This document shows, in pieces, positions 21,344 through 55,222 of a stretch of DNA of 64,000 bases. The translations under genes and the position numbers were made by a program. Source of the stretch: Hyalangium minutum (GTDB lineage: Bacteria > Myxococcota > Myxococcia > Myxococcales > Myxococcaceae); assembly GCF_000737315.1 (NCBI RefSeq), contig NZ_JMCB01000005.1:434001-498000 (forward strand). The letters are read 5' to 3'. The notes under the pieces are model-generated. The model was not told the DNA's origin, ran no database searches, and worked only from the letters and a program-made list of their open reading frames with translations. Each line of letters opens with the position of its first letter. The stretch's first letter is position 1.

Positions 21344-23032
21344 TCACAGCGAGCCCACCAAGGCGCGCAGCTCCTCGTCTTCCGGGATGGGAGAGAGCGC
21401 GCCCCCCTGGAGCCCTCGGGAGCGTTGCTGCTCTCCGCCGAGCTGGAGTGACTCCGCCAGCAGCGAGCGCGCCTGATCGCGCTTGCCTTGCAGGAAGGCG
21501 ATGTAGCCCGCATTCCACAGCGCCGTGGGGCCGCGGGGCTGACGCTCCAGCGAGGCGGCGATCTTCGCGCTCGCCCGCTCCAGGAATGCCAGCGCCTGGT
21601 CCCGCTTCTGTACCCAGCACCGCTTCGCCTCGAAGATGAGCACCACGCCCGCGTCGTTGAGGGCCTCGGCGACGCGCTCGCGCACGGAGGCTTCGGGCGC
21701 TCCGTGGTACCGGCGCGCGACCTCCTCGTAGGCCGCCAGGGACTCTTCGAGCCGGTTCAGCTTCCAGAGGATCTCTCCCTTGCAGGCGAGCCCCCGCGCG
21801 ACCTCCTCGCGCACCTCCGGCTCGGTGTCGCCGCCATAGCGGCGGTCGAGCTCGTCGAAGGCGGCCACCTCCTCCTCGCGCCGATCCATCCGGCCGAGGA
21901 ACACGGCCTTGTAGGCCAGAGACTTGGCCATCCGGGCGCGGACCAGGACGGGCTCGCTCGGGCCGCCGTAGCGCGGAATCATCGCCTCGTAGAAGGCGAG
22001 CGCCTCGGGCGTCTGCTTCAGGTTCCCCAGGACGACGCCCTTATAGAGGATGGCCTCGGCCACCGCGTCCCGCAGCGCGGGCTCGGACGCCTTGTCGAAC
22101 CGGCGGAGCACCTCGTCGAAGACGGAGAGCATTTCCTCGGAGCGGTGCTGCTGCCGGAGCACCTCGGCCTTCGCCAGCAGCGCTTGGGCCACTTTCTCGC
22201 GCGCTGCATGCTCCCGGGACTCGCTGTGGTCGCGGAGCACCTGCTCAACCGAGGCCAGCTCCACCTCCGCGCTCTTGAGCATCTCCAGGGTCCGGCCCAG
22301 GCCCTCTTGCGCCGCGGTCACCATGTCCCGGAGCCGGGCATCGCTGGCGCCGCGGAAGTGGTCCATCAGCGTCTCGTAGCAGGAGAGTGCCTCACGCGGG
22401 CGGTTCGAGAGCCGCAGGAAGATGGCCTTGCTCAGGAGCGCCAGGGCTGCGTGGTAGCGCAGCACCACGTCGCTCGCACCGGCGAAGCGGCGGAACACCT
22501 CGTCATAGAGGGGCAGCCCCTCGTCGAGCCGGTTCAGCTCACCCAGCGCATCGGCCTTGGCCAGGAGCGCTCCGGCCATCACCTGCGCCAGGCCCGCCTC
22601 GTCCGCGCCGTCGTGCCGCTGGAGCACCTCGTCGCAGAGGGGCACGGCCGCCTCGGACTGGCCGAGGTTCATCAGCGCGTGGGCCTTGTGGATGAGCACC
22701 TTGGACGTCAGCTCTCGCAGCTTCGTATCGGTGGAAGCCGCGAAGAGCCGGAGCGCCTCGTTGCAGCTGGCCAGGGAGTCCTCGAAGCGCTCCAGCTGCC
22801 CGAGCGTGATGGCCTTGCCGATGAAGGCTCGGGCCACTTGGACTTGCACGGCCTGCGCGCTGGAGCTTCCAAACCGCTGGAACAGCTGGCCCATGAGGGC
22901 CAGGGCCTCCTCGTACTGACGCTGGTCCATGAGCGAGTGGGCGTTGTCGACGAGCGCCTGGGCGGCCTGCTCCGGGGCCTCCCCCATGCTCGCTTCGCCA
23001 GTCCTTCGGCTCACTTCGTTCTCGGCAGCCAT
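21344..23032 (-). CDS. Tetratricopeptide-repeat protein
   Basis: About ten helical repeats such as EVLRRF..ASEPALR..VA.A...KG..L. Confidence 0.8.
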   Translation of the reverse strand: MAAENEVSRRTGEASMGEAPEQAAQALVDNAHSLMDQRQYEEALALMGQLFQRFGSSSAQAVQVQVARAFIGKAITLGQLERFEDSLASCNEALRLFAASTDTKLRELTSKVLIHKAHALMNLGQSEAAVPLCDEVLQRHDGADEAGLAQVMAGALLAKADALGELNRLDEGLPLYDEVFRRFAGASDVVLRYHAALALLSKAIFLRLSNRPREALSCYETLMDHFRGASDARLRDMVTAAQEGLGRTLEMLKSAEVELASVEQVLRDHSESREHAAREKVAQALLAKAEVLRQQHRSEEMLSVFDEVLRRFDKASEPALRDAVAEAILYKGVVLGNLKQTPEALAFYEAMIPRYGGPSEPVLVRARMAKSLAYKAVFLGRMDRREEEVAAFDELDRRYGGDTEPEVREEVARGLACKGEILWKLNRLEESLAAYEEVARRYHGAPEASVRERVAEALNDAGVVLIFEAKRCWVQKRDQALAFLERASAKIAASLERQPRGPTALWNAGYIAFLQGKRDQARSLLAESLQLGGEQQRSRGLQGGALSPIPEDEELRALVGSL

Positions 23033-23188
23033 GGGCTCCTCGTCTTGCTGATGCCTTTGTCCTACTCCCCCTGGCCGTGTCCAGTGGAGCATAGGACGGA
23101 CTCAGCCGCTCATGCGACCCTTGTCGACTTGCCTTTCGGATGCGGAGCATCGAGAGTCCCGGCCCCGCGAGAATCCGCCCGAGCCTTG

Positions 23189-24268
23189 ATGCGACAGGAC
23201 TCCGACCCCTCACCTCCCTCGCGTGGCCGCGTGTGGAGTGTCACCGTTGCGTCACTGCTGGGAGCGGCGCTGGCGGAGGGGCTCCACCTGCCCGCGGGGG
23301 CGTTGCTGGGAGGGATGTTGGTGGCGCTCGTGGGCTCCGTGTTCGCTTCCGTGCGCGTGCCCATTCCGAGAGCCCTGCAAATGGCCGCTCCAGCGGTGCT
23401 GGGGGCCGCTCTGTGCGCGGCCTTCCGGCCCTCTGCCTGGGCCGCGCTCGCCGAGCACTGGCCCATTGCTCTCCTCAACGTGGTGGCGGTGGTGGCCATC
23501 GCACAGGGGGTGGCGCTCGTCTTTGCCCGGTTGAGTGGCCTGGACGTCCGGACCGTCACCCTGGGCCTCATGCCGGGAGGGGCGTCGGCGATGGTGGTGC
23601 TCAGCGAGGAGCTGGGCGCGGACTCACGCCTGGTGACGCTCTTCCAGTACGTGCGCCTGGGCGTCGTCATCCTCGTGGCGGGCGCGGTGGGCCGATGGGC
23701 CATTGATACGCCTCAGCTCCCGGTGGCCTCCGCCTCAGCGCTTCCCGGTGCGCCGCCTCCGGGGCTGGCGTGGGGCGTGACGCTGCTCGTGGCCGCCGTG
23801 GGGGGCTGGGGGGGCATGCGGCTGCGGCTGCCGGCGGGGGCTTTCCTCGGGCCGCTGCTGGTGGGGGTGCCGCTCACGGCGCTGGGCATTCCGGTGGGCG
23901 CGTTGCCGCCGGGACTGCTGGCGCTGTTGATGTGGGTGCTCGGCGTGCGCGTGGGCAGCCAGTTCGATGCCGAGGCCGTGTGGCGGCTGCGGCGCGTGGC
24001 GGTGGGAGCACTCGGGGGCGCGGTGGCGGTGGTGGGCGGCTGCGTGCTGCTGGCCTGGGCGTGGTCCTCGCTCGGAGGCGTGGACTTGCTCACCACCTAC
24101 TTCGCCACCTCACCTGGGGGAGCGGATACGATGCTGGCCATCGCGCTGGGGACGCATGCGAGCTTGCCGCTCGTACTCTCAGTCCAGGTGGGGCGACTAC
24201 TGCTCGTCTTCTTCGTGGTCCCCATCCTCTTTCGGCGCCTGTCTCCGGGCCGCCGCAATCCTTTGTGA
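23189..24268 (+). CDS. abrB: AbrB-family duplicated membrane protein
   Basis: Two repeats of LPAG.LLG.., MPGGASAM/SPGGADTM; start ATG 23189. Confidence 0.8.
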   Translation: MRQDSDPSPPSRGRVWSVTVASLLGAALAEGLHLPAGALLGGMLVALVGSVFASVRVPIPRALQMAAPAVLGAALCAAFRPSAWAALAEHWPIALLNVVAVVAIAQGVALVFARLSGLDVRTVTLGLMPGGASAMVVLSEELGADSRLVTLFQYVRLGVVILVAGAVGRWAIDTPQLPVASASALPGAPPPGLAWGVTLLVAAVGGWGGMRLRLPAGAFLGPLLVGVPLTALGIPVGALPPGLLALLMWVLGVRVGSQFDAEAVWRLRRVAVGALGGAVAVVGGCVLLAWAWSSLGGVDLLTTYFATSPGGADTMLAIALGTHASLPLVLSVQVGRLLLVFFVVPILFRRLSPGRRNPL

Positions 24269-24304: not shown

Positions 24305-26140
24305 ATGCACTGGCACTTGCTCTTGAAGAGCGCGGTCATGGGGGCCGTGCTGTTCGCGATGTCCGGACTCATCGGGGCCGACGCGCACGCCCAGCAATGC
24401 GGTCCCGAGACGCCTCCGCCGGTCAAGCCGCTCAATGACCAGATGAGCGACACGCGGCTTTTGCGGCGCATCGTGCTCGGGCTTACCGGGACAACGCCGG
24501 CCATCGAGCAGTATGAGGCGATGGCGGCTGCGGCCACACCTGAGGCCCGCGAAGTGCTCCTGCGCTCGGCGCTGGATGACGCGCTCGCCTCGCCGAAGTT
24601 CTACGAGCGGATGCTGCGCTTCGGGCATGAGTGGCTCGCGGTGGGCGCGTACACCACCGGCGCTGCCGGCGACGCCTACCAGGGCGACATGTCCGGCCAC
24701 CTCTTTGCCTGCCCCGCCAACAGCCTGCACCCGGGCGCGTACTACCACGTGAACGAGTTTGGGTCGGGGGACCCGGGCCTGCAGTGCAAGGACCAGAACG
24801 GAGCCGGCAATCCCGCTGTGCCCGAGGTGCACACGGTGGAGCCCTGGTGGGCGCCGGGAACGACGGTCGAGGTGCTCGGCAAGGCCGGCTCCTCCGTCAC
24901 CCAGGTCGTCGACGCCCAGGGGAAGACGCTCGACTGCGGCGTCGCCAGCGGCGGCTACTACGATCCCATGCTGTCCGCCGGGTGCGGCTGTGGACCGAAT
25001 CTGGTGTGGTGCGCACCGCTCGTCGGACTGAACACCAGCAGCAACTTCAATCTCGGCGTTCAACGGCGCCATCCGTACGAGGAGCCCGCGCGCCTCTTCG
25101 CGCACCTCGCGTGGCACGATCGGCCGCTGTCGGACCTCGTCATCGGCAACTACTCCGTGGGAACCAACTGGTTGCGCGCGTTGTACGTGCGCTTCGGTCG
25201 GCAGCAGGGCAGCACCGCGCTGGACGCGAACACGACCTGGTGGCGCCCCGCCGCGGACAACGCACCTCGCGATCCGCTGCACCCGGCGCCGGATGATCCG
25301 CAGGCGTGGCGCGAGTTCGTGGTCGAAGAGCTGGAGCCCTTCCACCTCGCGCTGACCACCGATCGAGCGCGCTCCGGCAGTCTCGAGCGCACCTACCGCT
25401 TCGATCCTCGCACTACGACCGAAGCCCCCCAGGGACTTCCCACCGCCGGGGTGCTCACCATGATGGGCGCGATGTCCTCGTTCCCGCGCGAGCGCGTCCG
25501 AGCCGCGCGCTTCCTGGAGATGTTCGCCTGTCAGAGCTTCTCGCCGCCCCCCTCGGACGTGCACTTCCCTCCATACGAGAGCGATCCTGCGACCGGCGGA
25601 ACGTGCCAGCACTGCCACAAGACGCTCGATCCCGCGGCGATCTCCTTCAAGCGGTGGGACTTCAGTCCGTTCCAGAGCTACTACGTCCCGTGGCCCTTCA
25701 TCCCAGGCGTGGGCCGTCATCGCGTCACGAAAGAGTGGCTGTCCGGGCAGTACCCGCACACGGGCACCTCGCCGGGATACCGCTGGAGAAACGCGTTCCT
25801 TCCCAACACCCTGTTGACCCCGGTCACCCCCGAGCAGATCAAGGCCAATCCGGAAGCGGTGCTGCTCGACACGATGCCCGAGTCATACACGCTGCTCGGT
25901 GAGCACGGCGACGGCACGATGGGCCCGCTCGGGTTCGGAAAGCTCCTCGTCCGCTCCGGTGAGTTCGACCGCTGTGCCTCGCGCAGGCTCTACGCGATGT
26001 TCATCGGCCGCGAGCTGAATCCGGCCACCGAGAAGGGCTTCATCGACAAGCTCGCGAGGGAGTTCGTCGCACGCGACCGCAAGCTCCGTCCCTTCATCCG
26101 TTACCTCTTCGAACAGTCCGAGCTGCGGAGGGGCCTGTGA
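24305..26140 (+). CDS. Exported DUF1585/DUF1588-like protein with CxxCH
   Basis: Signal peptide; RLLRRI.L.LTG..P, AGVLT, CQHCH..LDP, GRE-type C-terminus. Confidence 0.6.
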   Translation: MHWHLLLKSAVMGAVLFAMSGLIGADAHAQQCGPETPPPVKPLNDQMSDTRLLRRIVLGLTGTTPAIEQYEAMAAAATPEAREVLLRSALDDALASPKFYERMLRFGHEWLAVGAYTTGAAGDAYQGDMSGHLFACPANSLHPGAYYHVNEFGSGDPGLQCKDQNGAGNPAVPEVHTVEPWWAPGTTVEVLGKAGSSVTQVVDAQGKTLDCGVASGGYYDPMLSAGCGCGPNLVWCAPLVGLNTSSNFNLGVQRRHPYEEPARLFAHLAWHDRPLSDLVIGNYSVGTNWLRALYVRFGRQQGSTALDANTTWWRPAADNAPRDPLHPAPDDPQAWREFVVEELEPFHLALTTDRARSGSLERTYRFDPRTTTEAPQGLPTAGVLTMMGAMSSFPRERVRAARFLEMFACQSFSPPPSDVHFPPYESDPATGGTCQHCHKTLDPAAISFKRWDFSPFQSYYVPWPFIPGVGRHRVTKEWLSGQYPHTGTSPGYRWRNAFLPNTLLTPVTPEQIKANPEAVLLDTMPESYTLLGEHGDGTMGPLGFGKLLVRSGEFDRCASRRLYAMFIGRELNPATEKGFIDKLAREFVARDRKLRPFIRYLFEQSELRRGL

Positions 26141-27195
26141 TGAGCCAGTTGCGTTCGATGCTGGGAGCCGCAGTGCTGGCCTCTCTCACACTCACCTTGG
26201 GGGCCTGCTTCGGCTCGGCCAGCACCACGGACACGAGAACCCCCAATGCCGAGGAGCCAGACGAGGGGGAGAGCTGCGCGGCCTTGAACAAGAACGATGA
26301 GATCCGGCTCGCGCTCGCGCCCGCATGCCAGGGCTGTCACCTCACCGGTAACAAGCCGTTCTTCGGCTCGCTGTCCGCGTTCGAGAGTGGGCTCGTGTAC
26401 AACGAGAGGTACGTCAAGCGCGGGGACCCCGAGAACAGCTTGCTGGTCCAGCTGCTCAAGGGCGTCGCACCTGGAAGCTATCCCCAGATGCCGCTTGGGC
26501 AGACCTACAGCGAGCTCGTCACCAGCGGCCGTGTCACGCTGACCCTCGAGCAGGTGGAGGCCTGGATTCGCGATCTGCCTGCTCCGCCCGCGCAGCTGGA
26601 GACTCCGTCTCCGGAAGAGTTCCACGTCCGCCGGCTGTCCGCCGACGAGATGGTGGTGAGCTTGATGGAGCAGCTCGGGCTCACGCTCGAGGACTTCGTC
26701 AGCACCAGCGATCCCAACTGGAGGAACAAGGCGTACGTGGTGAATGGCGGCAAGCTCTTCGTATGGCCCGGGGATTGGGCGCCCGGCATCTCGACCGAGT
26801 ATGTCTCCGACTCCCGCAGCGTCGAGCGGTACGAGGCGCTGGGAGGCGGCAACTCGCTCCTGTACCGCAAGCGGGACGTGAGCTTCGGTCCCTCCGCCGC
26901 GCAGACGCTGGTCCAGATGTCGCAAGCCTGGTGCGCGCGCGCGGTGGACAAGAGAAACAACACGGCGGTGTTGCGCTACGTGACGCTCTCCGACAGCTCC
27001 TCCCGCAGCCCGGACGCGGTGCGGAGAAACCTGAGCACGCTCTACCTGCGCATGCTCGGACAGCCGCCTTCGGAGGCGGAAGCGAGCGCGTTGTACGAGC
27101 AGGTCTATCTGCCGCTCGAGGCGCAGAGCACGCGCTTGGCCTGGATTGGCGTCTGCGCGGCGCTCATCCGTCACCCGCTGTGGATCACCTACTGA
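26137..27195 (+). CDS. Lipoprotein with c-type heme motif
   Basis: Lipobox LGAC; CQGCH; YPQMP; C-terminal LGQPPSEAE..WIGVCAALIRHP. Confidence 0.65.
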   Translation: MMSQLRSMLGAAVLASLTLTLGACFGSASTTDTRTPNAEEPDEGESCAALNKNDEIRLALAPACQGCHLTGNKPFFGSLSAFESGLVYNERYVKRGDPENSLLVQLLKGVAPGSYPQMPLGQTYSELVTSGRVTLTLEQVEAWIRDLPAPPAQLETPSPEEFHVRRLSADEMVVSLMEQLGLTLEDFVSTSDPNWRNKAYVVNGGKLFVWPGDWAPGISTEYVSDSRSVERYEALGGGNSLLYRKRDVSFGPSAAQTLVQMSQAWCARAVDKRNNTAVLRYVTLSDSSSRSPDAVRRNLSTLYLRMLGQPPSEAEASALYEQVYLPLEAQSTRLAWIGVCAALIRHPLWITY

Positions 27196-27207
27196 GCCGA
27201 GGACATT

Positions 27208-28788
27208 ATGAGGAACACCTCTCGTCGCACGCTGCTCAAGTGGGCCCTCGGAGCGGGACAGCTCGCGCTCCTCGAACGCGCGGGGCTCCTCGGCTCGAGC
27301 CCTGCTTACGCCGCGGGCATGGACGTCCCCTCACGGCTCGCAGTGCTCTACATCCCGGGTGGCTACCGGCCGGCGTACTACTTCACCCCGATGGAGGACG
27401 CCGACATTCCGCTCTGCGTCCCGGCCCCCTCCAACTACAGCGGCGAGCCCGTCTTCTTCGACGCGAGCAAGGTGGTGGACCTCGCGGCCGCGAACGGACC
27501 CTACAAGCCGCTGCGAACCTGGCAGTCGTGGAACCCCGCCGACCCCGCCGCGCGAGGCAGCTTCAGCCCGCTCATGTATGGCTACACGCACTTCGCGCTG
27601 CATGAGCAGCTGAGCGTCCTGCACGGCATCGACCAGGGCACCAACGACCACGCGAGTGCGTTCATCTCCTCCATGTGCGGTGTCGCCGGTGCGGACTACC
27701 GGGCGCCGGCCGTTCACTCGGTCATCGCCAATCACCTGTTCGAGAGGTACCGCGAGAGCAGACCGCTGCCGTTCGTGGTTGTCGCCGGTGAGCGCGGCAC
27801 GCCGCTGGGAATGGGGCTGCCCTCACACGCCTCGCCCGTTCGCGTGCCGTCCATCGAGTCGCTCAAGCCGCAGCTCTCCGCCAAGCCCGCGGATAACCCC
27901 TGGTGGACGGGGCTTGATGCGCGCACCGAAGCTCCCGAGCTGGACGCACGCGGGCAGCCCACCGGTAGCACCCTGAAGACGACCACGGTGGAGCGCTTCT
28001 CGCTCTCGCGCGCTCAGCCGTTGATGGACCGATCGACGGCGAAGGTGGACAACTACCTCGAAGGTCTGCATGGCTCGCTGGCGTCGGTCTCGCGCGTGCT
28101 CGCGACGGATGTCGTGTCCATGCTGGAGCGCACCAAAGGCATCGACACGCTGACGGCGAACCGCCCCGCGTACCTGTCGAGCTACCTGTCGAACCAATCG
28201 TTCACGTACACCTTCGGTCTCGCGAACTTCCACCTCACCGGGCTCGACCCGCGGATGGATCTCGCGCTGCGCCTGCTCAAGTCGGACCTCTGCACCTCGG
28301 TGCACGTCTCGTTGCAGCTCGACTTCGACACCCACAACGGCCTGGGCCATGGCTACAGCTGCGCACACGGCCGCGGGCTGATGGACTGCGTCGCGCGCTT
28401 CCTGGGCGAGCTCAAGGCTGCTCCGGCTCCCGGTAAGCCGGGCAAGACACTGCTCGATGACACGCTCGTGCTGGTGATGAGCGAGTTCGGCCGCAGCTGG
28501 GCCTCGCGCGGAAGCGACGGCACCTACAGCCTGCCGGATGATCATCACCCCTACACCTCGGTCTGCTTCGCGGGCGGAAACGTAGCGGGGAACCGGCAGG
28601 TGGGCTCGTACACCCCGCGCGGGCTCGGCGTCCCCGTGGACCTCATCGAGGAGACCGGTCAGCCCTCGAGGCGCGTGCCCAGATCCGCGGACGTCGTGAC
28701 CACCGCGCTGCGGATCATGGGCATGGAAGCGCACGACTTCTTCATCCCCGGTGGCTACGGAGAGGTCGTGGGGCTTCGGAAGGCGTGA
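27208..28788 (+). CDS. DUF1501-family protein with Tat signal
   Basis: SRRTLLK; FDTHNG; LLDDTLVLVMSEFGRS; DHHP. Confidence 0.8.
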   Translation: MRNTSRRTLLKWALGAGQLALLERAGLLGSSPAYAAGMDVPSRLAVLYIPGGYRPAYYFTPMEDADIPLCVPAPSNYSGEPVFFDASKVVDLAAANGPYKPLRTWQSWNPADPAARGSFSPLMYGYTHFALHEQLSVLHGIDQGTNDHASAFISSMCGVAGADYRAPAVHSVIANHLFERYRESRPLPFVVVAGERGTPLGMGLPSHASPVRVPSIESLKPQLSAKPADNPWWTGLDARTEAPELDARGQPTGSTLKTTTVERFSLSRAQPLMDRSTAKVDNYLEGLHGSLASVSRVLATDVVSMLERTKGIDTLTANRPAYLSSYLSNQSFTYTFGLANFHLTGLDPRMDLALRLLKSDLCTSVHVSLQLDFDTHNGLGHGYSCAHGRGLMDCVARFLGELKAAPAPGKPGKTLLDDTLVLVMSEFGRSWASRGSDGTYSLPDDHHPYTSVCFAGGNVAGNRQVGSYTPRGLGVPVDLIEETGQPSRRVPRSADVVTTALRIMGMEAHDFFIPGGYGEVVGLRKA

Positions 28789-29793: not shown

Positions 29794-31560
29794 CTACTTC
29801 AAAGCTGGCGGCAGTGCCTGTGACAGCGCCTGCTCCAGCTCGCGCCCGTGCGTGGTGTAGAGCTCCCTCCACTCAAACCCCGTGGGCAGCGTTCCTCCCT
29901 GGCCGACGAAGAGGTACACGAACAGATCCAGCAGGAGCCTTTGCGAGGACGTTCCACAGTAGCGCCCCAGGGGGTGGGGCTCTCGCCCCTCCGCTGGGAG
30001 AATCTCTCGCGCCACGCGCTCCAGCTCATCGGCGGTGTGGCGTACAGCCGAGGGAGCCGCCAGCTTGCGGCGCTCGGTAATTTCCTCGGCGAAGGGCGCG
30101 GGCAGCACGCGGCGAGCCACTTCGCGCAGCAACACCTTCCGCGTCCTCCCCCGGACGCGCTGCTCCCAGGGGAGCGAGAGCGCCAGGTCCCGGATCCTTC
30201 GATCCAGGTAGGGCACCCGCACCTCCAGGCCGCTCGCCATGGAGCCTCCATCCCAGACGCGCAGGTGCGCGTCCGTGAGCTGCCCCTCCAAGAAGAAGCG
30301 GTAGAAAGCCTCACGGGCCGCGGCTTCGTCTGGGAGGGCCACCGCCCGCAGAGCCGCCTTGGTGGAGGCGCACTCCTCCACGGGCACCGTGCCCGTCCGA
30401 ATCATCCGGTTGTAGCTCTCCACGCAGGACTTCAGCCATGGCGCGGAGCTCGCGTGGAGGACGTAGCCCGCGAAGAGCTCATCGGCCCCATCCCCGCAGA
30501 GCACCGCCTTGACGTGGTGACGGATGGCAGGAGCCGCCGTCTCCACAATGGTGGGCTCCGAGGGCCCCTCGATCGCGACGAGCGCACGCGGCAGGGACTC
30601 CAGCAGCTCGGCGGGGCGGAAGATGTACTCGTGGTGCCGCGTCCCCAGCGCCTCGGCGAGCCTCCGGCTCATGGCAAGGTCCGCCGACTCCGGATCATCC
30701 GCGAGCGAGAAGGTATGCAGCGCCGGCGAGCCCTCACGCGCCAGCAACGCGGCCAGCAGGGAGCTGTCCACGCCCCCTGAGAGAAAGAGCCCCACCGGGT
30801 GATCCGCCGCTCGCTGCCACCGTACCGAGCTCGTGAGCAGCTCGAGCAGCAACTCGGCCAGCTCCTCCTCACGCGTGGGCAGCGTGAGCGGGCGCGGCGC
30901 GCTGTGGCGGCCGGGGCGAAGCTCCAGGAGCCCATCCGGGCGGCGAGAGATCTCCAGCGTGCCACCGGGCGGCACTTGGCGAATGGCCCGGAAGAGCGTG
31001 CGCTCACCGAGCAGAAAGCGAAAGGTGGCCCACTCGAAGAGCGCCGTGCGATCGAGCTCCCGCGGCAGCGAGGGGTCCACCAGCAGCGCCTTCAGCTCCG
31101 AGGCAAACAGGAGCCGGCGGCCCCCGTCCACGAGCGCGTAGTACAGCGGCTTGATGCCGAAGGCATCCCTCGCCAGGGTGAGCCGCTCGCCGTCCGAGAG
31201 GGCGAAGGCGAACATGCCCTCCATCTCCTCCAGCCAGGCCATGCCCCGGCGCTCCAGGCCGCGCAGCACCACCTCGGTGTCGCTGCGTGTCCTCAAGGGG
31301 GGGCCCTCTCGCTCGAGCTCCCGGCGCAGCTCCACCGTGTTGTAGAGCTCGCCGTTGTAGGCGAGCGTCAACCCGGCCGGGCCGGACATGGGCTGCGCTC
31401 CCCCCTCCATGTCCACGAGGCTCAGGCGCGTGCTGCCCAGGCCCGCGTGGCCTACCACCGCCGTTCCCCATCCGTCCGGGCCCCGGTGCTCGAGCCGGCG
31501 TGTCATGCGCTCGAGCAACGCTCGATCCGGCTCACCAAAAATCCCTGCGATGCCGCACAC
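29794..31560 (-). CDS. Asparagine synthetase (AsnB)-like Gln amidotransferase, putative RiPP tailoring enzyme
   Basis: MCGIAG (catalytic Cys), HRGPDG, LSGGVDSS, GDGADELFAGY, EVRVPYLD. Confidence 0.88.
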   Translation of the reverse strand: MCGIAGIFGEPDRALLERMTRRLEHRGPDGWGTAVVGHAGLGSTRLSLVDMEGGAQPMSGPAGLTLAYNGELYNTVELRRELEREGPPLRTRSDTEVVLRGLERRGMAWLEEMEGMFAFALSDGERLTLARDAFGIKPLYYALVDGGRRLLFASELKALLVDPSLPRELDRTALFEWATFRFLLGERTLFRAIRQVPPGGTLEISRRPDGLLELRPGRHSAPRPLTLPTREEELAELLLELLTSSVRWQRAADHPVGLFLSGGVDSSLLAALLAREGSPALHTFSLADDPESADLAMSRRLAEALGTRHHEYIFRPAELLESLPRALVAIEGPSEPTIVETAAPAIRHHVKAVLCGDGADELFAGYVLHASSAPWLKSCVESYNRMIRTGTVPVEECASTKAALRAVALPDEAAAREAFYRFFLEGQLTDAHLRVWDGGSMASGLEVRVPYLDRRIRDLALSLPWEQRVRGRTRKVLLREVARRVLPAPFAEEITERRKLAAPSAVRHTADELERVAREILPAEGREPHPLGRYCGTSSQRLLLDLFVYLFVGQGGTLPTGFEWRELYTTHGRELEQALSQALPPALK

Positions 31561-31590
31561 GGGACGCTCCTCGCGGATGAACGAGCCGCC

Positions 31591-33561
31591 TCACGCCTGG
31601 GCGGCGGGAGCGGCCTTGGGCTCGGCGAACACCACGAGCCCCTCGCCATGGAATCGCTGGAGCGCCTCCAGCACCGCCTGCTCCACCTTCTGGGCGGGCT
31701 GTTCGCTCCGGCGCCGTTGGCCCTCGAGCAGCTGCCCCACGGTGCGCTCGCCGTCGCACTGCTGGAGCAGCTCCGAAGTCCACGCGTTCACCCGGAAGTG
31801 GTGGCCGTAGAGGTTGGGCCGCTTGTGGAAGAGGACCGTGGCCTCGCCCCCCGTGCCCTGTCCACCCGAGAGCATCCCCGGCGGCAGGGAGTGGAAGCGC
31901 TCCACCCGGACCCACTGGCTGCGCAGCGGCACCAGCGCGCGCAGCGCCTCGGGCGAGCCGTTTCCTCGGAGGGCCGACCACATGTCAGGCCGCTCGAAGG
32001 CAGGCTGCGCCTCCTCCTCAGGGGTGAAGTGCCCCATCCACACCAGCAGCCCGGTATAGCGCGCTGCCTCCGCCACGGCCGGCTCCACCGCTCCTCCCTG
32101 GCCCGAGCCCACCCACTGGCAGAAGGCTGCCGCGTCCGCGAAGAACGTGGGAGGCACCTCCGGGTGCGCCGCCTGGAAGGCCTGGAGCATGGGCTCGGCA
32201 CGCGCCCCGAGCACCTCCACCAGCCCGGGCGCCGTGCGGCGCAGCGCTTCGCCCCGGTTCTCGGGCAGCCCCCGCTCGGCCGGGGACAGCCGCCCTGGCT
32301 GCCCTCGGTGCTTGGCGATGACGTCTTCGAAGAGCCGCGTGAACTCCCCCGCGACATCTCTTCGGGGCAGTCCCTGCACCAGCTCCAGTCCGCGCCGGCC
32401 GATCTCCCGAGCGCCCTCCGGATCCTCGATGGCCTGGCGCAGCGCCCGCGCCAGCTCGCTGTGCACGCGGGGATCCGGCACCAGCAGCACGTTCTTCCCG
32501 GGGGCCAGGTGTTCGCGGAAGGGCTGCTTGGCGGCAATCTCCCCGGAGAGCACCAGGCAGGTGCCGCAGGCGAGCACCTCCCGAGGCACCGTGGGCGCGT
32601 GGAAGGTGATGGGGAAGTCCCGCTCCAGGAAGCACACCGCGCGGCACGCCCGGATGAAGCGCGCCACCTTCCAGTGCGCTACGAAGGGCAGTACCCACGT
32701 CACCTCCGCGAGGCCCTGTTCCTCCACCGCCTTGTGCAGGGGCGCCACCCGCTTGCCCCGCGTGAGCGCCACGAGGTTGAAGCGCAGCCCCTCCTTGCGC
32801 AGCAGGGCCAGCGCGCTCAGCAAGTCATACGTGCCCTTGGTGACTCCCACCTTGCCGTAGATGCCAATCACCGGCAGCGAGGGATCCAACAGGCGCGGGT
32901 TCCGCACCAGCCCCGGGTGTTCCCGGTTCAGCTCCTCGAGGACGCCGTTGATGTCCAGCGGCTCCACCGTGGGGCTGAAGCACTCGCGGATCAGATCGGG
33001 CGGCGGCCCCCGGTAGATGTTGTCGGGGTGGACCCCCATGCCGAGAAACAGCAGGGGATTGCCTGCGCACACGCCGTTCGCGCGGCGGATGATCTCCCGG
33101 TACGTGGTGCCCAGGCCGGGCCGGGTCATCAGCCTTCCGAGATCGCTGCCGGCGTTGCGCACCAGGTAAGGCACTCCGGTCCAGTGCGAGGCCATGTTCG
33201 CGGCGACGCCGTACGGCTCGAAGTAGTAGCTGAAGATGACCTCGCAGCGGTGGCGGCGGACGACGTCGGTGGCGAGGCCCGCGAGCTTGCTGACGTAGGG
33301 GTTCGCCTGCGGCACGTGCAGGAAAGCGGAGGAGCTGCGCTCGGAGAGGTGCAGTCGCACCCGCCCCGCGCCGAAGGTGGGCTCCAGCCACGAGCGATCA
33401 TCGGCCGTGAGCATGAGCCGGTAGTCGTCCTCCACCTCGTCCGCGTTGGTGACGACGTGGACTTCATGGCCGGCCTCGGCCAGCGCGCGGCACATCCAGT
33501 AGGACTGGGCGCTCACGCCACCTTGAATGGGGGGGTATTTGATGAGGGCGCAGATACGCAC
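31591..33561 (-). CDS. GT4-type glycosyltransferase fused to C-terminal MNIO-partner/RRE-like module
   Basis: KYPPIQGGVS, GHEVHVVT, EVLACGTCLV; C-terminus aligns by eye with the MNIO C-terminus. Confidence 0.8.
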   Translation of the reverse strand: MRICALIKYPPIQGGVSAQSYWMCRALAEAGHEVHVVTNADEVEDDYRLMLTADDRSWLEPTFGAGRVRLHLSERSSSAFLHVPQANPYVSKLAGLATDVVRRHRCEVIFSYYFEPYGVAANMASHWTGVPYLVRNAGSDLGRLMTRPGLGTTYREIIRRANGVCAGNPLLFLGMGVHPDNIYRGPPPDLIRECFSPTVEPLDINGVLEELNREHPGLVRNPRLLDPSLPVIGIYGKVGVTKGTYDLLSALALLRKEGLRFNLVALTRGKRVAPLHKAVEEQGLAEVTWVLPFVAHWKVARFIRACRAVCFLERDFPITFHAPTVPREVLACGTCLVLSGEIAAKQPFREHLAPGKNVLLVPDPRVHSELARALRQAIEDPEGAREIGRRGLELVQGLPRRDVAGEFTRLFEDVIAKHRGQPGRLSPAERGLPENRGEALRRTAPGLVEVLGARAEPMLQAFQAAHPEVPPTFFADAAAFCQWVGSGQGGAVEPAVAEAARYTGLLVWMGHFTPEEEAQPAFERPDMWSALRGNGSPEALRALVPLRSQWVRVERFHSLPPGMLSGGQGTGGEATVLFHKRPNLYGHHFRVNAWTSELLQQCDGERTVGQLLEGQRRRSEQPAQKVEQAVLEALQRFHGEGLVVFAEPKAAPAAQA

Positions 33562-33595
33562 GAAGCTCTCCTGGGGAGCGCGAGGGGGGCGGCGG

Positions 33596-35356
33596 TCAGT
33601 TCGCGGGCACCGCGAGGGTGAGGGCGTTGAGCTCCATCAGGCGGCGGACCACCTCGGCGCAGCTCCGGACTTCCTGGGCGCTCGCCTCGCCCGCCGCGCC
33701 GGGTGAGAGCCGTGCGGCGATCTCCGCCGTGGTGCGGCTCCCGTCACACAGCGCGAGCAGGGCGCTCGTCCGCTCGTTGATGGCCAGGTGGCGCACGTTG
33801 CGGAAGCCGGGCGCCTTGCTGAAGAGCACGAGCGAGGGCTTGAGCGGAACCTCCTCCGTGGCCTCGCCCGCGTTGAGGCGCCGCACGAGCTCCACCACAT
33901 CGCAGCCGAACCGCTCCACGCGCACGTGGGGCCCGGAGAGGGGACGCGCGGCCGCCAGCTCTTCGACCCCTGGGGCAGCGCGGCTCTCGAAGGCGCGGCG
34001 GAACTCCAGGGCCGTCTCCACCGGAGCCACCGTCGAGCACAGCTCGAGCTGGACACGCTCGAATCGGAGGATGTCCTCCAGCGGGAAGCGCAGCTCGGGC
34101 CGCTCCTCCAACACGCGGGAGAGCAACTGGAGAAACCAGAAGCCGTCTCGCACGGTGCGGTTGACGAACTCGGGGGAATGGCGAGGGGCGTGCTCCTCGG
34201 TGAAGCGATGCGAGACGTCGTGCCAGAGCTTGTGCAGCTGCAGCCATCGGCAGCTCGCCGGAGCGGCCTTGGTGATCAGCGAGAGCCGCTTGCTGGAGAG
34301 ATCATGCGCGAAGGTGTTCAGGTGCCCTGCCCCCACCGCGAGCAGCGCCTCCACCTGCTCTGGCCCCAAGCCCAGCTCCTCTCCCACGGCAGGGGGCGCG
34401 GCGAAGAACCGCTTGCGCAGTCCGTCCTCCACCAGCAGCCGGGCCAGCGCCGTCTGGAAGACGTGCGCGTCCGTGGGCAGCGGCGTGGAGGGGCGCTCGG
34501 GCCAGGCCGGGAGCGTGCTCCGGTGGGGCGGCCGGGGAGCCGCGCGGTGCGCACGGTGGAGAATCTCCTTGGCCCGATCGATGTCCTCGAGCATCTCCTG
34601 GAACTCCTCGGGGAAGTTCTGGTCCCGCTCGATCAGGACGGCACGGACCTGGCTGCGCTCGGCCACATACTCCAGCAGCTTCCACACCTCCGGGTGCGAG
34701 TCCACGCGCTGGCTGTGGCTGTCAATCCACTGGCCACCCCGCCGCTCGCCTCCCGCCAGGTGCACCTGGACGACCCGCTCCAGCGGCAGCGCGTCCAGGA
34801 AGGCGTACGGATCGTACCGGTGGTTCTGCGAGTTGATGAAGACGTTGGCCAGATCCAGCAGCAGGCCGCAGTCCGCCTCCGTCAGCACCCGGGTGATGAA
34901 CTCCGCCTCGCCCAGCGGGCTGGGGATGGCGAACGCATAGGTGATGTTCTCCAGCAGGAAGGGCACACCGAGGATCTCCTGGACCCGGCGCGCATTGGCG
35001 GCGCATCTGCGGATCGCGGCCTCGGTGAACGGCAGCGGGGTGAGCTGGCCCAGCTCCACGTCCCCCGCCCTCGTCATGCACAGGTGGTCGCTGGAGAAGG
35101 GCGCTCGGACGGCCCGCACCAGCTCGGCCACCTCCTGGCAATACGCCTCATCCAGCGGCGCATCCGTGCCGACGGACGTCTCCAGTGCGTGGGGGATGAG
35201 CGGATGACGCTCCAGCAACGGCAGCGCTCGCTCCATGCTCTCGGGCACGGAGCGCACGTATCTGTCGGCGATCAGCTCGAACCAGTCGATGCGATCGCCG
35301 TGCTTCAGCTGCTGCTCGCGCAGCTCGGGCCGGTAGCCAATACCGACCCCGAGCAT
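33596..35356 (-). CDS. DUF692 multinuclear non-heme iron oxidase (MNIO) fused to partner/RRE-like module
   Basis: GVGIGYR, WFELIADRY, PHAL, SDHLC, LLENI, LLLDLANVFIN, QVHLAGG, IDSH, IERD; ~300-aa C-terminal extension; alternative start GTG 35419. Confidence 0.92.
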   Translation of the reverse strand: MLGVGIGYRPELREQQLKHGDRIDWFELIADRYVRSVPESMERALPLLERHPLIPHALETSVGTDAPLDEAYCQEVAELVRAVRAPFSSDHLCMTRAGDVELGQLTPLPFTEAAIRRCAANARRVQEILGVPFLLENITYAFAIPSPLGEAEFITRVLTEADCGLLLDLANVFINSQNHRYDPYAFLDALPLERVVQVHLAGGERRGGQWIDSHSQRVDSHPEVWKLLEYVAERSQVRAVLIERDQNFPEEFQEMLEDIDRAKEILHRAHRAAPRPPHRSTLPAWPERPSTPLPTDAHVFQTALARLLVEDGLRKRFFAAPPAVGEELGLGPEQVEALLAVGAGHLNTFAHDLSSKRLSLITKAAPASCRWLQLHKLWHDVSHRFTEEHAPRHSPEFVNRTVRDGFWFLQLLSRVLEERPELRFPLEDILRFERVQLELCSTVAPVETALEFRRAFESRAAPGVEELAAARPLSGPHVRVERFGCDVVELVRRLNAGEATEEVPLKPSLVLFSKAPGFRNVRHLAINERTSALLALCDGSRTTAEIAARLSPGAAGEASAQEVRSCAEVVRRLMELNALTLAVPAN

Positions 35357-35406
35357 CGGCAGCTCATCCCATCTCGACAAGGGCTCTCCCGGGTACGCGC
35401 GAGCAC

Positions 35407-35439
35407 GAGCACGCCTCACGGCCCAAGCCGGGCGTGCTC
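35407..35439. promoter_or_regulatory. Stem-loop between precursor and MNIO genes
   Basis: gagcacgcc/ggcgtgctc outer stem plus cggc/gccg inner stem. Confidence 0.55.
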
Positions 35440-35471
35440 ACTTGCGACAGGACGGTACAGGCGTGGGCGCC

Positions 35472-35666
35472 TCAGGCGCTCTGGCTGACACAGCCACAGA
35501 GGCAGCCGGTGCCGCACACACAGCTGATGCACATGCTGCCCGCGTCCGTGAACGAATACGCGGGACCACAGTCCAGCATCTCCAGCTTGAACTCTTCGGT
35601 CTCCAGCGGCTTGGCGTCGGGGGCAATGAACTTCGCGTTCTGGAGGGGCGCGCTGGGGTTTTCCAT
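35472..35666 (-). CDS. Cys-rich RiPP precursor peptide (64 aa)
   Basis: GAGGA RBS; MENPSAPLQNAKFIAPDAKPLETEEFKLEMLDCGPAYSFTDAGSMCISCVCGTGCLCGCVSQSA; directly upstream of the MNIO. Confidence 0.88.
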   Translation of the reverse strand: MENPSAPLQNAKFIAPDAKPLETEEFKLEMLDCGPAYSFTDAGSMCISCVCGTGCLCGCVSQSA

Positions 35667-35736
35667 TTTTTCCTCAGAAGTCCTAGGGGGAAGGACTGAG
35701 ATTTTTACTCTGCGTGGACTTCCTGTCAATGCGCTT

Positions 35737-36921
35737 TCACCCAGGTTTCTCCTCCGGTGCCCCCATCCGGGCGCCCGTGAGGCAAGCCACGGCCGTCCCC
35801 ACGCCATCGCGAGGCGTCAGGACGGCGGCGAGCGCACGGGCCTGGTGCCGCAGGCGCTCGTCCGTCAGCGCCTGTTGTATCGAGGCGATCAGCTGAGGGG
35901 CCTTCACGCCTCGTGCAAAGAAGGGGGCCGGAGCGATGCCCAGGCGGTAGGCGCGCTCGGCCCAGAAAGGCTGATCATACGCATGGGGCACGAGGACCTG
36001 GGGGACGCCCGCACGCGCGGCCGCCGCGAAGGTCCCCGCCCCGCCATGGTGCACCACCGCCGCGACGCGAGCGAAGAGCGGGCGATGCGCGGCATGGCCA
36101 ATGCGAAGGAGGGGGCCCTCCACCTGAGGACGAGCGGGAGCGTTCCGCCCCGCATGGAAGACAGCGCGGCACCCCACGGCCTCCACCACCTCGCGCAGGA
36201 GCTGCTCGTTGAGCGCTGGCTCGCTCCCGGCGAGGCTGCCAAAGCCGATGTAGATCGGGGGCTCGCCGGCTGCCAGGAACGCCTCCAGCTCGTCCTCGAG
36301 TGGGCGGGGATCCTCGAGCAGCAGTGCTCCCGTAGGAGGCGCCCACACCTGCACGCCCCCCAGCGAGCCCAGGAGCTCCTCATCCGCGGCGAGCAGGACC
36401 CGCTCCGGAGGAAAGGCGTAGGCGAGCAGATCCTCCACGGGCGGTAGCCCACGCCGGGCGTGGAAGTCCCGCACCGTCTGGAGCAAGACCGGGGGCACGA
36501 AGATGGAGGTGCGCCCGCGGGGCATGAAGAGCCCCGGCGCGTAGACGACCGCCAGGTAGGGCGCGCCCACCGCCGCCGCCGCGGAACGAACCGCCATCGC
36601 CATTCCCGCGCCGAGCACGAAATCCACCCCCTCCGCGAGCGCGGGCAGACACTCGAGCTGAGCCCGACACTCCTGATCGAGGAAGGCCTCGATGGTGCCC
36701 GGAGGCAGGTAGCCCGGGGCGCCCCCGGCCCGCCCGCGAAGGAACTCCTCCACATCCTGTCCCATCGGCACGAAGGGCACCTGAAAGGCGGCGGCATCGG
36801 AGGCGTAGAGCGGCCGCGCCGCGAGGATGGCCTCGTGCCCCGCCGAGCGCAGGCCCAGGGCGAGGGCCAGCATGGGCTGGAAATCTCCACGAGAGCCAGG
36901 AGCTGCGAGCAGGAACTTCAC
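35737..36921 (-). CDS. GT1-family glycosyltransferase (GtfB/sterol glycosyltransferase-like)
   Basis: GGAGG RBS then GTG 36921; GSRGDFQPM, IYIGFGS, VVHHGGAGT, YDQPFWA. Confidence 0.88.
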   Translation of the reverse strand: MKFLLAAPGSRGDFQPMLALALGLRSAGHEAILAARPLYASDAAAFQVPFVPMGQDVEEFLRGRAGGAPGYLPPGTIEAFLDQECRAQLECLPALAEGVDFVLGAGMAMAVRSAAAAVGAPYLAVVYAPGLFMPRGRTSIFVPPVLLQTVRDFHARRGLPPVEDLLAYAFPPERVLLAADEELLGSLGGVQVWAPPTGALLLEDPRPLEDELEAFLAAGEPPIYIGFGSLAGSEPALNEQLLREVVEAVGCRAVFHAGRNAPARPQVEGPLLRIGHAAHRPLFARVAAVVHHGGAGTFAAAARAGVPQVLVPHAYDQPFWAERAYRLGIAPAPFFARGVKAPQLIASIQQALTDERLRHQARALAAVLTPRDGVGTAVACLTGARMGAPEEKPG

Positions 36922-47980: not shown

Positions 47981-48104
47981 ATCAAGGCGGAAGCAAAACC
48001 CCAAGCAGGTCGCGCTGTTACCGGCTAACGCCTTGATCTCTCATCGGTTCGTTCTGCCGTCCCATCCCGTTTCGTTCCGTCTCGTCCCGTTCTCACCCCC
48101 GCTG

Positions 48105-48127
48105 GAGGGGCACACTGGGGGCACATG
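48105..48127 (+). repeat. Putative integrase arm-binding tandem GGGCACA site (left)
   Basis: gaggggcacactgggggcacatg; 22/23 identical to 62816-62838. Confidence 0.65.
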
Positions 48128-48351
48128 CGGGTCCCTCTCCGCTCACCGAGTGCTGTCGAGAGAGCATCTGGGATACCCACCAACTGAGGCCTCCCTCTAG
48201 CCGTGGTAGCATTGGGTACATGGCTTCACTCCTCATTGAAGAGCGATGGCGCGAGCTACTCCGGGAAATCCGTCTCGGGGCCCCTCCCCACGATATGAGG
48301 CTCTACGTGAAGCCCGGGCATGGGTGCGCGGACGAGGTCGTTCGTGACTTC

Positions 48352-48455
48352 CTTTCGGACGATCTAGGCGAGCGAGGCGGCGCAATAGGCGGCGTTTCTC
48401 GGGCGCATCATTCAAATTGGGCGGCACTGTGTTTGCCCCAGGAGCGCTCTGCTCA
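48352..48455 (-). pseudogene. Remnant of XRE regulator C-terminus
   Basis: EQSAPGANTVPPNLNDAPEKRRLLRRLARLD vs EQSAPGANTVPPGLSDTPEKRRLLRLLARLD at 55574-55674. Confidence 0.7.
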
Positions 48456-48519
48456 GAGCCTGCCTCAAGAAACCAGCTACGCAAGCCCACCTTCAACGTC
48501 ACTGCTGAGTCGCCAGCAC

Positions 48520-49065
48520 TCACTCGATCGACGTTCGACAAGCCCCAAGCAGTACCAACTTGGCCTTCAGCAGATGGACTAGTTCACCGGCGCTTCCGAT
48601 GCCGAGCAGTTCCCGTCGAGTAAGGACGATAACCGAGATACCCCGATCAAGGGCGTTCGCGATTCGTTCGTGAGCGTTTCGCAGTTCATGCGCCTTGCCA
48701 CTGATACCGGATGCTGCAACCAAGAATCCAACGGGGCAACCACGGTTCCTAAGTTTTGCGACAAAGACATCTATCTCATTGCTGCCGACAGGTTGATCCC
48801 AGTTCTTGCACTCTGCGATCAGGACGTTTGGGAGGAACTCCAATCCTTCATCCAAGCGGTCATTCCACATTGTTACGTCTATCTCTTGCGAGACTTGGTG
48901 GTTTGTCGAGTTCCGCCTCATCAACTTTTGCGGAACTCCCTTCACCTTTGAGAACATAAAGACCACAATCTCTTCGAGGACGATTCCTTTGGCGTCGGCC
49001 GTTTTCGCCTTGTCGCCCTTCTTAAACAAGGCCGCAACCTTCGCGCGCAGAGCAGAGGTCGGCAT
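48520..49065 (-). CDS. Mrr-like PD-(D/E)XK restriction endonuclease domain protein
   Basis: QEIDV..IAECKNW..PVGSNEIDVFVAKL..GFLVAASGIS; TAATG coupling with upstream gene. Confidence 0.8.
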   Translation of the reverse strand: MPTSALRAKVAALFKKGDKAKTADAKGIVLEEIVVFMFSKVKGVPQKLMRRNSTNHQVSQEIDVTMWNDRLDEGLEFLPNVLIAECKNWDQPVGSNEIDVFVAKLRNRGCPVGFLVAASGISGKAHELRNAHERIANALDRGISVIVLTRRELLGIGSAGELVHLLKAKLVLLGACRTSIE

Positions 49066-49955: not shown

Positions 49956-50097
49956 ATTGGCCTCCAGTGAATCTATCCGTGTGGCTGCTTTCCGGCGGCT
50001 CGGAGGCGCGGTGGTACATGGCAACGAAGTCAAGCATGGGCGAACCCTACGCCCCCTGCGCGGCGGTTCGTGCTGGTGAAGCGAGAGGAGTGGGAAC

Positions 50098-53533: not shown

Positions 53534-53624
53534 GGCAAGACTCCTTGACGAGCATCCATCGCGTGCTGCAGTCGCATGCAATGAAGATGCTCGGACCACG
53601 ACATAGCCTTGGCGCACGACGACA

Positions 53625-53813: not shown

Positions 53814-53816
53814 CTT

Positions 53817-55164: not shown

Positions 55165-55222
55165 TGGCACAGGACTTCCTCAAGCTGTATGGCTCGATCA
55201 AGCTCACTATGTCTGCGGCGGA

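Follow-up and report, generated by a model that had tools for sequence, protein, structure and literature searches.

The 64,000 nt window from Hyalangium minutum analyzed here (NZ_JMCB01000005.1, positions 434,001-498,000; G+C content about 68%) carries, on the minus strand at 29794-36921, five closely spaced genes that very probably form a biosynthetic locus for a peptide made on ribosomes and modified after translation (RiPP), with a leader-guided pathway that belongs to a widespread and apparently uncharacterized family. The core of this family is a Cys-rich precursor peptide, an oxidative enzyme dependent on multinuclear non-heme iron (MNIO, DUF692) with its partner protein, and a family 4 glycosyltransferase (GT4) that ends in a putative RiPP recognition element (RRE); an enzyme resembling asparagine synthetase (AS) is present in most members. 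In the broad sense the cluster is an MNIO-dependent RiPP locus, and it can credibly be put forward as a candidate new class of RiPP. An earlier annotation of this stretch of DNA (referred to here as the original prediction) had proposed a five-gene minus-strand operon, and both reading of the open reading frames (ORFs) and Pfam domain calls confirmed it. The genes are transcribed in the order family 1 glycosyltransferase (GT1), precursor, MNIO fusion, GT4 fusion and AsnB-like enzyme, with intergenic gaps of 30-92 bp. From the 3' end of the operon, the features are:

29794-31560, minus strand: AsnB-like glutamine-dependent amidotransferase, 588 aa (Pfam GATase_7 and Asn_synthase, 1.7e-60)
31591-33561, minus strand: GT4 with helical linker and putative PqqD-type RRE, 656 aa (Pfam Glycos_transf_1, Glyco_trans_4_4 and PqqD)
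33596-35419, minus strand: MNIO (DUF692) TIM barrel with a TglI/ApyI-like partner domain ending in a putative RRE, 594-607 aa (PF05114, 2.7e-78)
35472-35666, minus strand: precursor peptide, 64 aa with 7 Cys (direct reading; ATG at 35666, GAGGA ribosome-binding site)
35701-35729, minus strand: sigma-70-like promoter match TTGACA-17-AAAAAT (consensus match only)
35737-36921, minus strand: GT1 (GT-B fold, inverting), about 394 aa, accessory (Pfam EryCIII-like_C and Glyco_transf_28)

The precursor gene is present as a single copy in the window and is located 53-92 bp upstream of the MNIO gene, of which the start is either a GTG codon at 35419 or residue 14 at 35380. The encoded peptide, MENPSAPLQNAKFIAPDAKPLETEEFKLEMLDCGPAYSFTDAGSMCISCVCGTGCLCGCVSQSA, consists of an acidic leader with the motif ETEEFKLEMLDCGPAY and the core CISCVCGTGCLCGC, in which a Cys-Gly dyad occurs twice; no Pfam or NCBIfam model matched this peptide. 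Further related loci came from a metagenome scan with a 30-sequence GT4 alignment, in which 420 relatives were confirmed among the first 600 candidates and 80 loci were returned; in all loci, ORFs were called and then searched with the window proteins. A homologous small ORF was found directly upstream of the MNIO gene in every related locus examined, and the precursor-bearing loci are:

L001, Corallococcus exercitus
L007, Stigmatella sp.
L005, Myxococcus sp.
L004, Sorangium sp.
L008 and L012, metagenome contigs
L006, Kofleriaceae metagenome-assembled genome (MAG)
L002 and L003, Acidobacteriota MAGs

Alignment of the precursors across relatives revealed a leader motif, (E)EFxLx(M/L)(L/V)D(C/F)Gx-x-Y, and a core consensus, C-x-(S/R)-C-x-C-(G/A)-x-x-C-x-C-G-(C/S/T), with five essentially invariant Cys residues; written more narrowly, leader and core read EEFxLxMLDCGxxY and C-x-S-C-x-C-G-S/T-G-C-x-C-G-C/S. 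Differences between the window precursor and four orthologues are predominantly found at the third codon position (e.g., 8/13 and 19/34), and in three of these four comparisons there are more synonymous than non-synonymous codon changes. Since the ORF is found in the same position in every related locus, carries a conserved motif and differs mainly at third positions, it is, on these sequence grounds, a real gene and more than a chance reading frame. Cys-rich small ORFs accompany the GT4-MNIO clusters throughout the family (examples are ...ASCGSCSGCSGCSTSGCGGCGSCSAATA; ...RTCACHAECACHGGLCACSCACIA; ...SSCIVCFVCFVCVVCL...; and ...SSCDGCHGCSGCSM, the last found in two copies), and Cys is the sole residue common to all precursor cores. 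The C-termini vary across the family, that of the window precursor being VSQSA, and the cores of two clusters that contain AsnB, L024 and L004, are without Asp or Glu.

The promoter match listed above sits between the GT1 stop codon and the precursor start and is the sole such match in 10 kb (0.2 expected); as a consensus match, it would allow the precursor to be transcribed from a separate start. An attenuator hairpin between the precursor and MNIO genes (-42.9 kcal/mol) was also considered and rejected, as it was no better than shuffled sequence (z -0.2).

The product of the gene downstream of the precursor matches PF05114 (MbnB_TglH_ChrH) over residues 24-287, with 263 bits against a cut-off of 25, and this region is followed by a C-terminal extension of about 300 aa. 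In Foldseek searches with an AlphaFold2 model of the protein (mean predicted local distance difference test, pLDDT, 87.8), the N-terminal half matched TglH, 3BWW and MbnB (template modeling score, TM, of 0.81-0.86; E 2e-17 to 1e-10). In sequence the domain aligns with 3BWW, TglH and MbnB, and its motifs PH, SDH, LEN, LDLxN, HLAG, DSH and ERD coincide with those of MbnB and TglH and do not vary among 14 orthologues; we take these motifs, including the third-site D-x-H, to hold the metal ligands seen in the published MbnB and TglH structures. Foldseek also matched the second chain of the TglHI complex, taken as TglI (E 1.4e-6, TM 0.63), and this match probably belongs to the C-terminal half of the fusion, because the ApyI partner model covers residues 429-586 (E 1.2e-8). 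On the basis of the TglI-like fold match and the ApyI model match, the window protein is a natural fusion of an MNIO and its partner. Such fusions are rare, with about 17 full-length relatives, mostly in Myxococcota. The window's natural fusion mirrors an artificial HvfB-HvfC fusion, which was built to stabilize that complex and proved useful for spectroscopy (PMC13419390). The partner domain of thiooxazole-forming MNIO systems, DUF2063 (PF09836), was not found in the window protein at E<0.01; the HvfC model gave 17.5 bits against a cut-off of 142 (E 0.0028), and 3DEE was not among the top 50 fold matches.

Among NCBIfam models, those for HvfB, BufB and ApyH scored best on the window MNIO, all of them under cut-off (e.g., 204 bits against 310 for BufB and 206 against 360 for HvfB). 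The MbnB model TIGR04159 reached only 38 bits against a cut-off of 325, and similarity to TglH amounted to 94 bits. When the window MNIO and nine other GT4-linked MNIOs were compared with NCBIfam, all scored highest with the BufB and HvfB models (190-257 bits), again below the cut-offs. The original prediction had named a match to an already characterized cluster as grounds for abandoning its reading, and no such match emerged, as the window MNIO reached none of the equivalog cut-offs for BufB, HvfB, ApyH, ChrH and MbnB. With its PF05114 score, TIM barrel, ligand set, RRE-bearing partner and adjacent precursor, the protein nevertheless appears to combine the features of an MNIO that matures a RiPP.

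The next gene encodes a GT4 with a PqqD domain at residues 582-643 (Pfam). The AlphaFold2 model of this protein (pLDDT 92) is nearest in fold to the retaining GT4 enzymes BshA, MshA, GlgM, sucrose-phosphate synthase and PimB', with E 4e-17 for the BshA and MshA matches. A GT-B fold, an N-terminal Gly-rich loop, a Lys/Arg diphosphate-binding motif and the C-terminal Glu of the EX7E motif, as found in retaining GT4 enzymes, are all present, and K8-Y-P-P-I-x-G-G15, K237, K242, E313 and E328 are invariant. Over roughly its last 80 residues, the protein is homologous to the C-terminal end of the MNIO fusion (E 8e-8); since these C-termini are homologous, the MNIO fusion and the GT4 are predicted to carry related leader-binding RREs. 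As both the MNIO and the GT4 carry such domains, a peptide substrate for the cluster is well supported.

The link between these two enzymes extends well beyond H. minutum. Non-conservation of the operon, which the original prediction had also named as grounds for giving up its reading, was not what the related genomes revealed; the operon recurs across phyla, in Myxococcota and Acidobacteriota, with precursor, MNIO, GT4-RRE and AsnB found together in Stigmatella, Corallococcus, Myxococcus, Sorangium, Kofleriaceae and Acidobacteriota. A search for relatives of the GT4-RRE protein yielded 959 matches at E<=1e-10; among the matches listed, at least 120, mostly full-length (about 640-710 aa), share 38-75% identity with it, and those listed include proteins from Sorangium, Plesiocystis, Acidobacteriota and the actinomycetes Nonomuraea, Sphaerisporangium and Spongiactinospora. 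An estimate of family size from the 256-aa C-terminal region of the GT4 (34 matches at E<=1e-3 among 1.84 billion representatives) was not usable, because this domain diverges too fast for a single-sequence search. Co-occurrence was assessed in 19 metagenome and genome loci chosen only through GT4 and with at least 3 kb on both sides. MNIO was found in 18 of these 19 loci, the partner in 16, AsnB in 11 and GT1 in one, and the median gap between GT4 and MNIO was about 350 bp. To regard the window cluster as belonging to a large MNIO-GT4 family is more fitting than to treat its five genes as an isolated curiosity. Of the two glycosyltransferases that the original prediction had assigned to the pathway, GT4 is upheld by this co-occurrence, whereas GT1 was found, among the loci examined, only in the window, L001, L007, L008/L009 and L012; GT1 is an accessory of one myxobacterial clade and lies outside the family core.

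Three architectures were observed among the related loci. The MNIO, partner and GT4-RRE are encoded by separate genes in 23 loci, the partner is part of the same ORF as the GT4 in 13 loci, and the MNIO is fused to the partner, as in the window, in 8 loci. In six of the 13 loci with a partner-GT4 ORF (L034, L036, L041-L043 and L067), a stand-alone MNIO adjoins a GT4 of 711-763 aa (e.g., L041:522-2657). No other partner-like ORF was found in these six loci, and the C-terminal half of their GT4 gave partner matches down to E 1e-18. Judging from these ORFs, the glycosyltransferase protein must itself serve as the MNIO partner in the six loci, and a GT4 that is the sole partner would tie GT4 and MNIO to one substrate. 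Recurrent accessory genes in some relatives encode a second GT4 of about 540 aa (in the acidobacterial clade), several methyltransferases, ATP-binding cassette (ABC) exporters and a metallo-beta-lactamase (MBL)-fold protein. A membrane M50 peptidase with an HExxH motif (Pfam), absent from the window, is encoded at L002:15779-17017, L023:10036-11436 and L024:9998-11284. The N-terminal region of this protein looks PqqD-like by reading, with Pfam reporting only the M50 part, and the protein is a candidate leader peptidase of the acidobacterial branch. The peptidase, the exporters and the methyltransferases are accessories well known from RiPP clusters, and their presence in some members fits the RiPP assignment.

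The AsnB-like enzyme matches TIGR01536 with 365 bits against a cut-off of 267, and its nearest solved structure is a natural-product hydroxyamidotransferase (7YLZ), followed by E. coli AsnB (1CT9). Across 21 cluster-linked orthologues, its N-terminal (M/V)CGIAG motif, the PP-loop S261-G-G-x-D-S266 and the dyad D360-E361...Y366 show at least 95% conservation; a Glu-Tyr dyad has been highlighted for AS-like peptide amidases (PMC13060819). Two near-identical metagenome contigs differ in this gene, as a frameshift splits AsnB in L008 (L008:13797-15547) compared with L009 (L009:13797-15548), which could represent an assembly error or a pseudogene. For GT1, the longest possible ORF extends to 37059. 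With homologues of 379-382 aa and an alignment to GtfA that starts at residue 50, however, a start near V47, at 36921, is likely. The best solved relatives of GT1 are GtfA, GtfB and GtfD of the vancomycin group (E 1e-51 to 6e-39). With these two proteins included, catalytic motifs are intact in all four enzymes of the cluster.

From this gene content we infer a pathway in which each chemical step, the order of the steps and the biological role of the product (metal binding or antibiosis) are predictions. The leader would be bound by the RRE with which the MNIO-partner fusion ends, and the multi-iron TIM barrel would oxidize Cys residues of the core. A four-electron oxidation of Cys to 5-thiooxazoles seems the most likely reaction, with the isomeric oxazolone-thioamide or a new reaction as alternatives. 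BufB, HvfB and FonB have been shown to convert Cys to 5-thiooxazole (PMC11626156; PMC13419390; bioRxiv 10.1101/2025.11.18.689057) and FonBC prefers Cys-Gly (bioRxiv 10.1101/2025.11.18.689057). Because the GT4-linked MNIOs are closest to BufB and HvfB and the dyad preferred by FonBC is found twice in the window core, 5-thiooxazole formation is the leading guess for the MNIO chemistry, although its chances fall slightly short of even. The GT4-RRE would then bind the same leader and glycosylate the core, with a nucleotide sugar as donor. Taking into consideration that GT4 is as universal as MNIO in the family and that Cys is the sole universal core residue, the acceptor is probably the Cys sulfur or the exocyclic thiol of a Cys-derived heterocycle, with Ser/Thr as an alternative. 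A second sugar could be added by GT1 in the clade that includes the window and by the second GT4 in the acidobacterial clade. Finally, the AsnB-like enzyme would adenylate a carboxylate and amidate it with glutamine-derived ammonia, as in the AS-like C-terminal amidation or nitrilation reported for TsrC, ScdTA and PesC in other RiPP pathways (PMC13060819). Its target is most likely the peptide C-terminus, which is the sole peptide carboxylate in the L024 and L004 cores because these lack Asp and Glu. The order of steps would thus be Cys oxidation, glycosylation and C-terminal amidation, and in the myxococcal clusters leader removal and export would depend on genes outside the cluster.

Several observations weigh against this pathway. 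The MNIO scores 204-206 bits where the BufB and HvfB equivalog models require 310 and 360, and its partner appears to be TglI/ApyI-like and not of the DUF2063 type found with thiooxazole formers, so that the reaction could differ; moreover, MNIO chemistry is not predictable from sequence (PMC13060819). In the GT4, an insertion has moved the first Glu of EX7E out of place. The AsnB-like enzyme is without an RRE and is absent from about 40% of the family clusters. In addition, a Pfam scan of the neighboring genes found no peptidase or exporter within about 8 kb on either side of the five genes, in agreement with the original prediction, which had described the operon as lacking both.

The sequence relationship of the MNIO raises the question of whether the locus simply encodes a copper buffer of the captophorin/bufferin type, in which the MNIO would install 5-thiooxazoles and the glycosyltransferases and AsnB would be mere decorations of a known class. 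Proximity to BufB and HvfB is consistent with this explanation, as are Cys-rich cores with the Cys-Gly dyads preferred by FonBC (bioRxiv 10.1101/2025.11.18.689057). In addition, genes for MbnP and a MauG/MbnH-like di-heme peroxidase are located 2.6 kb downstream of the MNIO-GT4-AsnB cluster of Sorangium sp. So ce375 (L010:14622-16543); this pair is typical of copper-related operons and may either hint at a link to copper or be coincidental. The explanation is nonetheless unlikely, as the MNIO reaches neither of the two equivalog cut-offs, and its partner resembles TglI and ApyI, with no DUF2063 (PME1) domain found. Furthermore, the precursor has an acidic leader, not a Sec signal peptide, and shows none of the motifs EGKCG, DUF2282 and Cys-Lys, the Pfam-scanned flanks contain no DoxX or copper-regulon genes, and GT4 is as universal as MNIO in the family, which is not what would be seen with an occasional decoration.

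Other explanations concern the AsnB-like enzyme or the locus as a whole. Lasso cyclases are homologues of asparagine synthetases, and the AsnB-like enzyme does give a weak match to the lasso-cyclase model NF033535 (E 5.9e-43), which could indicate a lasso-type or macrolactam cyclase that forms an isopeptide ring instead of an amide. This match reaches only 147 bits against a cut-off of 525, while the enzyme retains a conserved glutaminase nucleophile (Cys2) and a complete, conserved GATase domain, and on these two points a lasso-cyclase function was rejected. With no transglutaminase-like leader peptidase (B protein) in the cluster and no Asp or Glu in the AsnB-containing L024 and L004 cores, we consider a cyclase highly improbable. 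Less remote, but still improbable, is a role for the AsnB-like enzyme in amidating a uronic-acid sugar placed on the peptide by GT4, which would yield a uronamide of the kind known from some O-antigens. An RRE is missing from AsnB itself, and the enzyme was never found without GT4 in the loci examined, both of which would fit such a role; its second-best NCBIfam match, the XrtA/PEP-CTERM exopolysaccharide amidotransferase, would do so as well, but with 291 bits it remains far under the cut-off of 817. No UDP-sugar dehydrogenase is encoded in the cluster, and the AS-like precedents from RiPP pathways act on the peptide C-terminus (PMC13060819). The locus could also be read as an ordinary envelope or exopolysaccharide glycosylation locus with a spurious small ORF and an MNIO that is adjacent by coincidence, considering that polysaccharide loci commonly contain GT4, GT1 and AsnB-like genes and that 'glycosyltransferase involved in cell wall biosynthesis' is the JGI name for many homologues of the GT4. 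The RRE fused to GT4, the conservation of the small ORF with a signature of purifying selection, the co-occurrence of GT4 and MNIO in 18/19 loci and the lack of a flippase, polymerase or sugar-nucleotide gene in the Pfam-scanned flanks largely refute this reading, which retains almost no probability.

Compared with characterized systems, the RiPP pathway proposed here shares individual components with several of them. The MNIOs of the captophorins (bufferins, oxazolin and fontiphorin) are the nearest in sequence, and they too require a partner that ends in an RRE and act on Cys-rich substrates. However, BufB, HvfB and FonB work with a DUF2063 partner, whereas the TglI/ApyI-like partner of the window is fused to the MNIO, and captophorin precursors carry a Sec signal peptide, in contrast to the acidic, non-hydrophobic N-terminus of the window precursor. 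The window family also adds an obligatory GT4-RRE, a frequent AsnB and, in one clade, GT1. TglHI (pearlin, 3-thiaglutamate) and MbnBC (methanobactin) share the MNIO fold and metal-ligand set and both act on Cys, but sequence similarity to them is low and the window is without the PEARL ligase, MbnT, MbnM and MbnN. Dedicated glycosyltransferases that act on a ribosomal peptide are also found for glycocins (sublancin and glycocin F) and for glycosylated thiopeptides and lanthipeptides, and S-glycosylation of Cys has precedent in the glycocins. While the glycocin enzymes are leader-independent GT2 enzymes with a GT-A fold (SunS/ThuS type), those of the window are a GT-B GT4, RRE-fused and MNIO-linked, and a GT1. 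GtfA, GtfB and GtfD, the closest solved relatives of this GT1, glycosylate a peptide aglycone or extend the first sugar, but their substrates are non-ribosomal glycopeptides, unlike the ribosomal peptide proposed for the window.

Nitrilobacillins likewise have an MNIO (PesH/PesI) and an AS-like enzyme (PesC) in one RiPP cluster, and theirs is the only characterized RiPP pathway found with this combination (PMC13060819). PesC is an AS-like nitrile synthetase that acts on the peptide's C-terminal carboxylate through adenylation and glutamine-derived ammonia (PMC13060819). The Pes MNIO, however, hydroxylates Asp, the precursor is not rich in Cys and terminates in R(V/T)DN, and the system is restricted to Bacillus relatives. 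In addition, the nitrilobacillin cluster encodes M16 peptidases, a transporter and a pseudo-MNIO (PesX) and is without a glycosyltransferase, whereas neither a second MNIO-like gene nor an M16 peptidase was found at the window cluster in the Pfam-scanned flanks. The original prediction had put forward a candidate new class from an MNIO, two glycosyltransferases and an amidotransferase; for an MNIO with a glycosyltransferase no characterized pathway was found in the literature searched, but for MNIO and AS-like enzyme as such, nitrilobacillins are a precedent (PMC13060819). As far as its genes can tell, the window cluster would belong to none of the captophorins/bufferins, methanobactins, lasso peptides, nitrilobacillins or glycocins.

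Full-text literature searches, with subscription-only literature outside their reach, likewise found no characterized MNIO pathway with a dedicated glycosyltransferase, as the original prediction had maintained. No account of this type of cluster emerged from searches on MNIO/DUF692 with glycosyltransferase or asparagine synthase, on RiPPs with GT4 or on thiooxazole. A 2025 survey of the MNIO landscape includes many small uncharacterized MNIO clusters, for which co-encoded Pfam families are given only in a figure; its main text contains neither 'glyco' nor 'asparagine', and the Pfam and genus names searched for are absent from its supplements. The family may thus have been seen in that survey but not described. 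Overall, the interpretation put forward in the original prediction is supported at the genomic level.

A more far-reaching proposal is that these clusters represent a new and widespread RiPP class of soil Myxococcota, Acidobacteriota and Actinomycetota, in which thiol-bearing heterocycles made by the MNIO from several Cys residues would be S-capped with sugars by a leader-guided GT4, the GT4 would sometimes serve as MNIO partner, and the AS-like enzyme would provide a C-terminal amide or possibly a nitrile. In this full form the proposal is speculative and, on balance, doubtful. If it is true, S-glycosylated 5-thiooxazole (or related) chemistry would be without precedent.

The genes within about 8 kb of the cluster encode DUF808, DUF1501, PSCyt2 and DUF7305 proteins, an extracytoplasmic function (ECF) sigma factor, a tetratricopeptide repeat (TPR) protein, a phosphatidylinositol-specific phospholipase C (PI-PLC) and a Ser/Thr kinase. 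The DUF808 gene, 45 bp downstream on the same strand, was considered as a cluster member but rejected, as it is not conserved in the related loci searched, and the upstream DUF7305 gene was likewise left out. Three genes on the plus strand at 24305-28788 (PSCyt2/PSD2/DUF1800-like and DUF1501) represent a pairing that is common in Planctomycetes-type genomes and are unrelated to the cluster. In the 926-aa ORF at 21488-24268, a membrane domain of the AbrB family (PF05145) is confined to the C-terminal third. The N-terminal 600 residues are without a match, and G+C at the first codon position is very high there; an error in the start codon or in the gene model is possible. At 48000-56000, G+C content is lower (0.59-0.63 compared with about 0.68) and defense-like genes are found:

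49065-50216, minus strand: Mrr_cat, weak match
50098-52020, minus strand: AAA_23, weak match
52454-53617, minus strand: ABC-3C system CTD6-domain protein (6e-38)
54382-55164, plus strand: AbiJ_NTD4 protein (1e-21)

This region is probably a horizontally acquired anti-phage island; ribosomal RNA was rejected as a cause of the low G+C content at 48-56 kb, as no Rfam match was found there.

Only a handful of the more than 14,000 MNIOs have been studied, and their reactions are unpredictable from sequence. The family that includes the H. minutum cluster has hundreds of members in soil metagenomes, and in it an MNIO is genetically locked to a glycosyltransferase, a pairing that is absent from the literature searched. 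Characterization of one member would probably reveal both new post-translational chemistry on Cys and a leader-guided GT-B peptide glycosyltransferase, which could aid peptide engineering. It would also bear on whether glycosylated thiol-heterocycle peptides are metallophores or antibiotics in predatory myxobacteria.

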